64,000 nt of DNA from Adineta vaga (taxonomy: Eukaryota > Animalia > Rotifera). This document shows positions 29,483-33,646 of this stretch, piece after piece (positions within the stretch are counted from its first letter, which is position 1; every line of letters begins with the position of its first letter). The translations under genes and the position numbers were made by a program. The stretch is from the NCBI GenBank assembly GCA_021613535.1, contig CP075492.1, forward strand, positions 10,788,001 through 10,852,000, given 5' to 3'. A model generated the notes under the pieces. The model saw only the letters and a list, made by a program, of their open reading frames with translations, had not been told where the DNA came from and made no database searches.

Positions 29483-30765
29483 GATGTAGAAGTGTTGGGC
29501 TTAGTTATTGTTTTTGATAAATACTAGTGAAAAGTAATAATGATGAATATGATGTGATCTCACAGGTCACACTACAGTTCTTTTTTTTTCTCTTTTGTCG
29601 TCGTCGTCGGCTTCTCTCTCCCTCTCAAGCAATGATTCAATGTTTTTACTTGCTTCTTAGCTATAACGGACACACTGTAAGTAAATATCATACAATAAAA
29701 CAAAAAAAAAGCGAGAAAGAGAAAAAGAATGAAAGCGCAGTTCTTATCGTATTGGCATGTGTATGTATTTACTTCAAATCGAAGCGTCACTATTTGTAAT
29801 ATTGCAATTGAAAAAAAAAATTGTGTCATATATACGGACACACACAACTGCCTCTATTGTTCAACAAAATCGATCATGTTACATTAATGTATGTGCGGTC
29901 AACTCTTTTTTCCCCCTTTTTTTCTTCTTCTTCTTCTTCATCGTCCTCTTCTCTTTTGTTCCCATCGAATCGATCTTTTTTGTCCAGACAGAGAGTAAAC
30001 GAGAGAAAGAAGGAGAAATTCTATATATATATATATATATATATGAATGTATGAGTGGACGACGAGTAATCATGACGTTTTTGCTGTTTATTAGTCGCTT
30101 GGTGTGAGTGTGTATATGGAGATGACTTGCTTCATTGCTCAACAGACTTCGAATATATATATATATATGTATGTATTTATATACATAAAGAGAAAAGATC
30201 ATGATGTAATAATAAATAGTATGTGCATATAACCAGATGTTGCCCATAGACATATGCTAGACGACAACAGCAGGGGGTACTTATTTATAACTGTATCATT
30301 TTTCTCTTTACCGATTTTGACTCAATCATGAACGGAAGAATGACATCGATATCAATGTTTGTTTAGATTGACAATAACAGATATTATTAGTCAATTAATG
30401 AATGTCGTTTTCTATATTGACACTGATAAGTTAGTGAAACTTGTCAATTAATCACTAAGACAAACGGATAAGGCTCATTGAGATCAAGGCTATACTATCT
30501 ATGTGAGAGAATGTTGATATCCTATATTATCTCTACGTAACCTTGATAAGATGAAAAAGGTATTATTCTTTCTCTAATATATCTCTTGAGCAATCTTTCG
30601 ACAAATGATTCTTTTCTATTAATGTAGTTCATTACTATGCTAAATATCTATATCTATAAAGAAATTCTACTGTATAGTTACAATTAATTTGCTTCTTGAT
30701 TATTATAGTCAAAGAAAAAACATCGTAATATACAAACAAGAAATGTTTGACAGTCTTCTTCGTTA

Positions 30766-31939
30766 TCATAAAATTCGTCCATAAATATTCCAAAGACAAA
30801 CAATTAATGAATTGTCATTATTATTCATAACTAAACATGCATGAAGTAATGCATGGAATTGTTGACGAACTGATTCATTATTAACTATTTGTTCTAATGT
30901 TGTATTATCATGTGATGTAATTATTTTTTCTAGAATATTGATAAGAATTGAATTGTATGTTGAGTTATGGTTTACATGTTGAAATAAAGCAAATAATTCA
31001 ATGAGTATTTGTTCAAAAACTAATAAGAAATAAGATGATTGACAGCCTAAAATTGAGAAGAAAAGATTTTAGTAAACAATAGCGTTCGTTTATGATACAA
31101 TGCATAACACTCAAAAATGAACTCTTGATTTAAGTATCGAATAAGTGTTTTTGTTAGTTAAATTTTACCAGTTTTATCGAAAGAGAGAAAGAGATGTGAT
31201 GACAATTGTGCGTGCCATCTGGGAAGTTCTGAAGCAATAGCAAACATTCTTTTGTCAATATTTATAGACATCGGAAATGAAGAATCTGTTCGTGCATTTC
31301 AGACACAAACAATACTTCAATCGTACTGTAATGGATATGTTGAATAAATGAACAATATTGGAATAAATCATTCTTCGCTATATATACCGATTTGTTCAAT
31401 AAGCATTTGGCCATTGTTTGTAATTTTTGATTGTTTTATGCACATCAGAATTGAACTAATCAAATTTCGTATAGTTGAATGGAAGATTTTTGAATATTCG
31501 GCACAATATCATAGTTTATAATAATACCAATCAATTGTTTGAATAGAATTTCATATTTTTCTTCTTTGATTCGTAATAAATTTTCTTTCATTAATTCGAA
31601 TATTCGATCCATCGTTTCAATAATTAATGTTTGTAACTCAATATTAAAATCTGTTGATTGAGTAAACACATTCTGTAAAAAATTTCCATGATGTTCAAGT
31701 AAATCGAATGCATTCTTTGGAATAATCATTGATCGTGAAGATTTTCGAAGTGAACATATATCAACTAAAACTTGTTCGAATTGAATAGCTTCATTGATTT
31801 TATTTCTTCGTAAAGTGTTCTGTAAATGTATTGTAAAATCTCTTGGTGTTAAATGTGATGGTGTTAATCGAATGATAGCCATGGTTAGTGAAAGTTTTTT
31901 ATAGAAATTTTCATTATATAAGAATGTTTGTACATTCAT
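30766..31939 (-). pseudogene. MEI4: MEI4-like meiotic DSB-formation protein, interrupted by an apparent 1-nt frameshift (real null allele or assembly indel)
   Basis: N-terminus KLSLTMAIIRLTPSHLTPRDFTIHL versus remembered human MEI4 KLALALAIIRSKPADKSSREYTEHL; internal HGNFLQ versus HMQFLQ; last exon SYFLLVFEQIL and CLWNIYGRIL versus FYLFWVLEQLL and YLWRVGILL. The frame switches between about 31508 and 31462. Confidence 0.7.
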
Positions 31940-32040
31940 GATATTCTACAAGAATCAATATTCTTGAGATAGAAAAAGAAGAAATTCAAAGAAAACTCTT
32001 TCTCAGTTCAAACGATTTTATTGAAAAATAAAACTGTTTA

Positions 32041-33646
32041 TCACAAAGTGGCATACATTTTCAAATAATGTTTAGCAAACGGAGAATTAGGAACCATTAT
32101 CATAAAACTCGGCATACCAAGTTGAACAACAAATCTATTTAAAAACAAATTTAGAATATACATAAACGTACAAATAATTTTATGAAAATATTTCTACCCT
32201 GGTAATTGAAGCGTTTCCAGAAGTGTTTTATCAGATGGAACAATCTTTAATTGATGCTTATCACGATCTTCATAATAGATCTAGAAGAAGATTTTTTGTA
32301 ATTATTAAGGAGTGATTAAAAAGATCTTACACTCATTTGATCTAACGTATATTTCCCTTCTTCATCCCATGGTGCACGCGATTGAAACATCTCAGCTAAT
32401 TGATCAATAAGTCTAAACACGAAATAAACTTTATCATAGAATATCATTTTCGTTGGACGTTACTTTGTATTCTGATGAAATTCTTTTATATAATCCGTTT
32501 GTCCATATTCTGGATAGAGAAATACAACTGGAAATGTTAGTGTTTGATTTTCTTCATTCAATTGAATACAACTTCCGGCAGGATTCGAACTTATATTGAA
32601 TATATCAAAAGAAGGGTCTTCTTGTAAACGAATATTATGTTTCTAAGAAGAAATCCTCGTGTGAATTTATATACAAATGATTAAGTTCATACCTTGACAG
32701 CGTTCAAAACTTTCTGTTGTTCATTTCGTTGTTTTCGATCTAAACCTTGTTGTTTTCTGTCATCACGTTCTTTTTCTTTCTAAAAAGAATACGAATGAAA
32801 AAACTATTTCGATAAAAAGTCAATATTGAGTTACTTGTAACTTGGCTGCTCGATCACGTATTTCGATTAATTTATCATCATTGTTAGAAAACATTGAAGA
32901 GAAAAAAATTCATGTTAAGGAAAAGAAGAACTAGCAAAATATGTTCCGAATTGAAAAAAAAGAAAGAAACTTAATCAAACAAAAAGGATACTGATAAACC
33001 AGCTGTGCACCAAGATTGAGCTTCTTGATATTTACTTAATTTCATACATGATTCAGCAGCTTTTAAATATGCCTTCAAATGATCAGGTTTACATTTTCTC
33101 GATAGAACACAATCACGTAAAGCCGATCGATGATTACCCAAATAGAAATTTGCTGTGGCACGATTACAGAATAGAACAGCATTGATAGTCGGATCTGGAC
33201 AACGTTGTTTGATACCTTCGGTATACGCAAGAATTGCATTACGATATTTTTTGTATCCGTAATATTTATTGCCTTCTTCTTTGTATTTAGTTGCCTTTTC
33301 TAGAATTTATTTGATCTAAAATAATATTTGTACTTTCGAATTTCATTTCTATACCTAAAGGTGTATCGTCATCATTATCCCAATGCAATGCTTGTAAAGC
33401 TGCTGTTGCTGGGTGAAGTTCTGCACCTTCTTGTGGCATTTCTTTTAAAAAGAAGGGATGTCCTTCGAGATCCTAATATATATATATATAAATATAATAG
33501 AATCAAAACTATCATTTCCTGTTCATTCTTACTTTCCAAAAGGCATCATCCAGTTGACCCGTTGGTAAATTATCTTTGTCTTCGACAAGTTTATCAATGA
33601 ATTCATCAAGTTGTTGATCAAGTTCTTCCGGTGAGGGTGTAGCCAT
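32041..33646 (-). CDS. TTC4: Tetratricopeptide repeat protein 4 (Cns1/Dpit47 Hsp90 co-chaperone)
   Basis: HPFFLKEMP..AALQAL, ATKYKEEGNKYY..YTEGI, VLFCNRATANFYLGNHRSALRD and the wheel-domain motif FPVVFLYPEYGQTDYI. Confidence 0.9.
32892..32991 (-). other. U12-type (minor) intron in TTC4
   Basis: 5' splice site GTATCCTTT at 32991 and branch site TTCCTTAAC at 32922-32914. The 3' end is uncertain (see findings). Confidence 0.8.

Follow-up and report, generated by a model that had tools for sequence, protein, structure and literature searches.

[quoted passage not shown] A locus on chromosome 3 bears on this question. An earlier note had recognized a MEI4-like gene there whose reading frame is interrupted for lack of a single base, and had offered two explanations: that programmed double-strand break (DSB) formation is decaying, or that an intact, overlooked MEI4 is masked by a sequencing error. 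Is this gene, which we call MEI4-A, a MEI4 at all, and is it broken? We consider it likely that MEI4-A is an intact, single-copy, two-exon gene of A. vaga, coding for a very divergent MEI4 homologue of ~284 residues, and that the reference lacks one base of it.

The window analyzed here is a stretch of 64,000 nt of chromosome 3 (10788001-10852000) in the haploid A. vaga reference (6 scaffolds, 100.8 Mb), and MEI4-A lies on its minus strand (Table 1). In the list of open reading frames and its translations, a first ORF of 159 aa spans 31939-31460 (-) and closes with a TGA at 31462-31460. Another frame (..IRNLISSILMCIKQSKITNNGQMLIEQI) stays free of stops from 31508 until it meets a GT at 31387-31386 (-), and an AG at 31048-31047 (-) gives a phase 1 junction with the last exon, whose stop codon lies at 30768-30766. 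The ORF end at 31460, the overlapping frame, the donor at 31387 and the acceptor at 31047 are thus all present as they had been described. The intron is also borne out by RNA: contigs from two sequencing runs, X10 and X19, carry the joint 31045->31387, with GT..AG on the minus strand, and since these contigs skip the 341-nt intron, spliced RNA of MEI4-A exists. The expression evidence consists of spliced contigs from whole-animal RNA libraries. Exon 1 is backed by the ORFs, by collinear alignment with intact orthologues and by an RNA contig over 31482-31932, and a profile built from the family matches it at positions 1-157 and 154-189. Exon 2 is matched by the same profile, shares 74% identity with Adineta steineri, and has a pN well below its pS.

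Table 1. Features of MEI4-A and of related loci. Five-digit positions are those of the window; chromosome positions and positions in other loci are marked as such.
Feature	Position	Strand	Remarks
Exon 1	31388..31939	-	ATG at 31939-31937; in two frames in the window since a base is absent at 31473/31474
LSLTMAII motif, codons 16-23	31871..31894	-	LALTIAII in orthologues; putative counterpart of mouse MEI4 alpha-1
Omitted-base site	31473..31474	-	C-T in the window; CAT (His) in DNA and RNA contigs; His in every orthologue
False stop TGA	31460..31462	-	arises solely from the missing upstream base
T5 run	31487..31491	+	error site proposed earlier; unchanged in all four runs
Single intron	31047..31387	-	341 nt, GT..AG; phase 1, splitting the Gly codon that follows ..IEQI
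Alternative GT donor in intron	31167..31168	-	same acceptor, 122 nt skipped, one X10 RNA contig
Exon 2	30766..31046	-	last 92 residues and stop; predicted C-terminal HEAT-like helices, end ..LWNIYGRIL
Introns of orthologues	L009:6551-6995, L012:3554-4966, L013:3551-4706, L014:3563-5125		same Gly codon, phase 1
MEI4-B, I4U23_014109, 376 aa	chromosome 3:10523555-10524765 (L010:1450-2660)	+	MEI4-like paralogue
REC114-like candidate, small two-exon gene	chromosome 3 about 10401650-10402306 (L011:1054-1710)	+	~417 kb from MEI4-A

A word search of proteins with the 159-aa piece returned 30 homologues. Full-length orthologues of 273-279 aa are found in A. steineri, Rotaria magnacalcarata, R. socialis, R. 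sordida and two Rotaria sp. isolates, and all of these read through the site of the break without interruption. Over ~10 kb, A. steineri and the window have the same genes in the same order (Septin, an SH2/SH3 adaptor, MEI4-A, a Wheel-domain gene and an RRM gene), and the Rotaria loci also keep the order Wheel-domain gene, MEI4-A, SH2/SH3 adaptor. With ~30 homologues, a conserved gene order and spliced RNA contigs, MEI4-A is far beyond a chance ORF. Searching the whole genome by DNA, by protein and by profile revealed no ohnologue or second copy of it.

Mouse MEI4 and yeast Mei4 (PF13971) are the REC114 partners of the RMM complex, whose proteins have pairwise identities ‘well below 10%’ between distant species (PMC10393190). 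In the bdelloid family, 13 of 21 members match Pfam Mei4 at E<=1, the lowest E being 1e-5; the best score among the orthologues is 24.9 bits (E 1.7e-5) against a curated gathering cut-off of 25. In every match, residues ~15-69 are aligned to profile positions 17-71. Only 2 of the 21 members match the second most common Pfam family, and no other recurs. The name ‘MEI4-like’ given to the gene earlier is thus supported by consistent signals, all of them below threshold: no member reaches the cut-off, and the A. vaga pieces themselves have no Pfam match.

The matches are centred on the LSLTMAII stretch, which corresponds to a part of MEI4 that contacts REC114. In mouse, helix alpha-1 of MEI4 (13-LALALAII-20) inserts into a dimer of REC114 C-termini, where it touches REC114 F230, L231, F240, F243, V244 and V247, and helix alpha-2 contributes contacts through T33, L36, A37 and V40 (PMC10425845). 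The bdelloid proteins carry 16-LALTIAII-23 (LSLTMAII in A. vaga) together with T36, L39 and L43, in register with mouse L13..I20, T33, L36 and V40, and these residues fall on predicted helices 10-25 and 32-65. At the level of sequence and predicted helices, then, MEI4-A appears to possess the LALALAII-type N-terminal helix of MEI4.

Searches beyond sequence alignment point in the same direction. We used the orthologue P0011 as a stand-in for the full-length protein in an ESM Atlas feature search and in a fold model. The ten Pfam-carrying clusters nearest to P0011 all carry Mei4, and clusters of plant MULTIPOLAR SPINDLE 1 (MPS1) rank just under them; these clusters score 0.92-0.93 and share 204-209 of the 256 features with P0011, in a search whose stated false-positive rate is 4-10% at 0.9. 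The AlphaFold2 model of P0011 (pLDDT 78, pTM 0.67) predicts three N-terminal helices followed by a 10-helix solenoid, with the solenoid helices running from residue 76 to 275 at pLDDT 80-94, and residues 65-276 match TOG/HEAT domains with Z 13.4-10. In published descriptions, Mei4 orthologues begin with flexible helices and continue into HEAT repeats (PMC10393190), and in the predicted model HEAT-like repeats likewise follow the N-terminal helices, in ~five helix pairs as compared with the four HEAT repeats described for Mei4.

When the genome was scanned in six frames with Pfam Mei4, the MEI4-A locus was not picked. The scan picked another gene, at chromosome 3:10,523,606, ~296 kb from MEI4-A, which we call MEI4-B. 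The two proteins have an N-terminal motif in common (KKLSLAITIIRNTP in MEI4-B, KKLSLTMAIIRLTP in MEI4-A), and the intron of MEI4-B is in phase 1 and falls after ..QMIISL, just past the helix that ends exon 1, as does that of MEI4-A. MEI4-B also has bdelloid-wide orthologues of its own, and its nearest Atlas clusters are again MEI4 (0.94). In a profile-profile comparison (hhalign), MEI4-A and MEI4-B match with a probability of 88.6% and an E of 2.7e-6, over the N-terminal 52 columns only. The remainder cannot be aligned, and MEI4-B, which has a Ser/Gln-rich tail, exceeds MEI4-A by ~90 aa. When the MEI4-B profile was used in a word search, all matches were in bdelloids. Since MEI4-B shares the motif and the N-terminal profile match and has its own orthologues and MEI4 neighbors in the Atlas, bdelloids appear, from these sequence comparisons, to carry two anciently diverged MEI4 paralogues.

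The existence of MEI4-B raises the possibility that MEI4-A is a MEI4-derived paralogue that has taken on another role, in accidental breaks or in pairing during non-reductional meiosis, with MEI4-B making the canonical DSBs. The coexistence of two deeply diverged MEI4-like families in Adineta and Rotaria, which share nothing but those 52 columns, would fit this, as would the length of MEI4-A (~276-284 aa, where typical MEI4 clusters have 356-415 aa). Nothing in these data separates the functions of the two genes, however, and the Pfam Mei4 signal is more consistent in MEI4-A (13 of 21 members) than in MEI4-B (2 of the 10 sequences scanned), so that we regard a changed role for MEI4-A as unlikely.

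A more radical objection is that MEI4-A is intact and yet no MEI4 homologue: it would be a HEAT-repeat protein peculiar to bdelloids, in which the likeness of the hydrophobic N-terminal helix to that of MEI4 is due to chance. HEAT solenoids are common folds. The fold matches of MEI4-A are generic TOG/HEAT domains, and an ESM Atlas shape search gave only generic HEAT/ARM rows with TM <0.5. The Pfam matches are all sub-threshold and limited to ~55 residues, and the profile searches reached no canonical MEI4: the family profile, run against 1.84 billion proteins, retrieved nothing outside this bdelloid family apart from one spurious repeat protein, and in sequence searches of the PDB neither the 159-aa piece nor the family profile gave a relevant match. 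Against chance, Mei4 comes up at the same profile positions in 13 of 21 members with no other family recurring, MEI4 and MPS1 clusters are all that the independent language-model search brings up, the residues through which two successive mouse helices make their contacts recur in register, and the protein as a whole has the architecture reported for Mei4 orthologues. We accordingly hold a chance likeness to be distinctly improbable, and descent of MEI4-A from a true MEI4 to be very probable; the identity is supported, not proven, by several independent lines that are individually weak.

Comparison with known systems gives this identity its context. MEI4-A resembles mouse and yeast Mei4 in its LALALAII-type helix and the T..L...V spacing of its second helix, in the predicted succession of flexible N-terminal helices and a HEAT-like solenoid, in having MEI4 as its nearest Atlas clusters, and in evolving fast (dN/dS about 0.3-0.4). 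Unlike them, it has ~280 aa rather than 389-408 aa, its similarity is detectable in ~55 N-terminal residues only and lies under the Pfam cut-off, and its host is an animal without known males in which meiosis I is non-reductional. Caenorhabditis elegans provides precedents for both features of the bdelloid genes. DSB-3, a MEI4 homologue, is a highly diverged RMM component that was long overlooked, and DSB-1/DSB-2, a duplicated REC114, show that duplication occurs within the module; C. elegans has duplicated the REC114 side, whereas bdelloids seem to have duplicated the MEI4 side, as MEI4-A and MEI4-B. The plant protein PRD2/MPS1, which is among the nearest Atlas clusters of the MEI4-A orthologue, likewise has REC114/PHS1-binding helices at its N-terminus and HEAT repeats behind them (PMC10393190); it comes from another kingdom and has no HMMER-detectable sequence match to MEI4-A.

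The Pfam REC114-like profile, scanned over the genome, picked chromosome 3:10,402,097, where an ORF ends ..YLSTCLMDPMFYIFVDRNEQML.. and matches profile positions 175-236 of 236, the MEI4-binding end, at a sub-threshold E of 0.0032. Aromatic and aliphatic residues of this ORF are spaced like F230, L231, L235, F240, F243 and V244 of the mouse protein. We regard this gene as a candidate REC114, a lead and no demonstration. The Pfam IHO1 profile matched nothing anywhere in the genome, controls included, and is hence uninformative.

We turn to the break itself. A. vaga aligns to the orthologues in three collinear pieces, at 31939-31475 (..NIQKSSIQ), 31472-31389 (IRNL..IEQI) and 31044-30769, and the intact orthologues read ..NIQ(K/Q)HSIQHIRxFIDL..IEQIG|CYxSYFL.. 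across the break. Where every orthologue has a His codon, the minus strand of the window has two bases (C31474, T31473), so the lesion is the absence of one base inside this codon. The site is 14-18 nt from the T5 run in which the base had been supposed to be missing, in a short TA context that is not a homopolymer.

Four public runs from four studies, comprising DNA and RNA, were compared with the window over positions 30600-32100 as assembled Logan contigs, not raw reads: X2 (2013), X6 (2021), X10 (2024) and X19 (2013, filed under another organism label). X1, the run that is most likely the assembly's own source, is not one of the four. All contigs over the site (about eight, from all four runs) contain one extra base, a T behind 31473 on the plus strand, at depths of 232.5/232.5, 99.5/99.5, 22.2/22.2 and 7.2/7.2 in the four runs. 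With this base the minus strand reads CAA CAT ATA (Q-H-I), which is what the orthologues predict. At 31487-31491 the same contigs list no insertion or deletion. Each run contains two haplotypes, one with 31414 T>C, 31440 G>A and 31481 G>A and the other with 31466 T>C, and the extra base is on both. The letters of the window are those of one haplotype at 31414, 31440 and 31481 and those of the other at 31466; because of these mixed letters, the window must be a mosaic of haplotypes across the error (31384-31511). The reference was produced with NextDenovo from ONT reads, with haplotypes purged and HyPo polishing (PMC8494291), and a base omitted between mosaic SNP sites suggests a local mis-consensus in a collapsed long-read assembly. 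Every contig of the four runs has the extra base, whichever of the two haplotypes it represents, and we conclude that an error of consensus or polishing in the assembly, and not gene decay, produced the frameshift.

This outcome decides between the two explanations first offered for the locus. The second, in which a MEI4 that is intact was overlooked behind a sequencing error, was essentially right, since the contigs restore the frame, and a frame-disrupting lesion in the DNA of the organism, as decay of programmed DSB formation would have it, is contradicted by the same contigs. Reads with a sixth T in the T5 run had been named as what would speak against a pseudogene; the frame is indeed restored, but by a base at 31473/31474. 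X6 also differs from the window outside this site: two bases are deleted at 30647, and three substitutions lie at or just beyond the end of the gene (30757-30778). These differences probably reflect a different A. vaga isolate or haplotype.

A decaying gene should also show relaxed constraint, with a dN/dS near 1, notably downstream of the break. A comparison of alleles and ohnologues had been proposed; the genome has no ohnologue, and comparison with the orthologues gives no signal of decay. Pairwise NG86 dN/dS is 0.26-0.44 among the orthologues and 0.29-0.39 between A. vaga and the orthologues, the latter from codon pairs pooled over the three separate pieces, with constraint as strong after the break as before it. 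The two post-break pieces have pN 0.14-0.26 and pS 0.26-0.64 against the Adineta and Rotaria orthologues, like the pre-break piece. Among the variants in the runs there are 8 coding SNPs (5 of them synonymous) in ~825 nt, as against 12 SNPs in the 341-nt intron. A real one-base deletion in the sequenced culture, heterozygous or recently fixed, which would make MEI4-A a young pseudogene and programmed DSB formation a decaying process, has on its side the reference sequence itself, a public annotation that stops at the TGA, and the place of X1 outside the runs compared, and is very unlikely against a base found in all ~8 contigs from four runs of 2013-2024 on both haplotypes, a reference that is a haplotype mosaic exactly at this site, and equal constraint on both sides of the break. 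A search by eye for a short intron that might rescue the frame near the stop turned up a 49-nt GT..AG candidate, which runs into a stop. MEI4-A is intact, transcribed, spliced and conserved under constraint.

The missing base shifts the frame, creates the false TGA and leaves the public annotation with a truncated model, P0001, of 140 aa, from Met20 to the false stop (window 31460-31882). P0001 is without the first 19 residues, which include half of the putative REC114-binding helix, and without ~125 C-terminal residues. The reference genome and its annotation are thus wrong at MEI4-A, and as a consequence surveys of the ‘meiotic toolkit’ would miss the gene or score it as broken. Full-text searches of the literature for MEI4 or REC114 with bdelloid, Adineta or rotifer found no paper that identifies these genes in bdelloids.

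As MEI4-A is intact and its frameshift an error of the reference, the locus argues for, and not against, working machinery for programmed meiotic breaks. With a MEI4 homologue, its paralogue and a candidate REC114, licensing factors of SPO11 would be added to the case for programmed breaks, and MEI4-A modestly supports an intact SPO11 licensing machinery in an ‘asexual’ animal. By analogy with mouse and yeast, we infer that MEI4-A binds REC114 and has a role in DSB formation: its N-terminal amphipathic helix (LSLTMAII) would insert into a dimer of REC114 C-termini, its C-terminal HEAT-like solenoid would complete the REC114-MEI4 module, and this module may condense on DNA and license programmed SPO11 double-strand breaks in the non-reductional meiosis of bdelloid oocytes. 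It is also conceivable, and in our estimation doubtful, that bdelloids have a cryptic but complete REC114-MEI4 module in which the duplicated MEI4-A and MEI4-B, sharing only the REC114-binding helix, form alternative REC114(2)-MEI4 trimers with divided roles, such as programmed SPO11 breaks for one and pairing or the repair of accidental breaks for the other. Were this true, the ‘programmed or accidental’ origin of bdelloid recombination would become genetically testable. MEI4-A, MEI4-B and the REC114 candidate are concrete targets for knock-out.

Minor forms of the RNA are present in X10. One contig has the alternative joint 31045->31168 at a depth of 7.39, with just 28 nt on its shorter side, and another is unspliced across the normal donor. 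Retention of 31387-31169 leads to a stop six codons past the normal donor, and the alternative-donor and unspliced contigs suggest partly spliced or unproductive RNA. We also considered a three-exon model using frames within the intron (31314-31265; 31285 or 31298 to 31169); the residues it adds are in no orthologue, and the main RNA joint skips them. The orthologues have an intron at the same phase-1 Gly codon, of 445 nt in A. steineri and of 1156-1563 nt in three Rotaria orthologues, and a metagenomic homologue, P0032 (L015), is intronless. In every Adineta and Rotaria orthologue examined, this single intron is unusually long, at 341-1563 nt.
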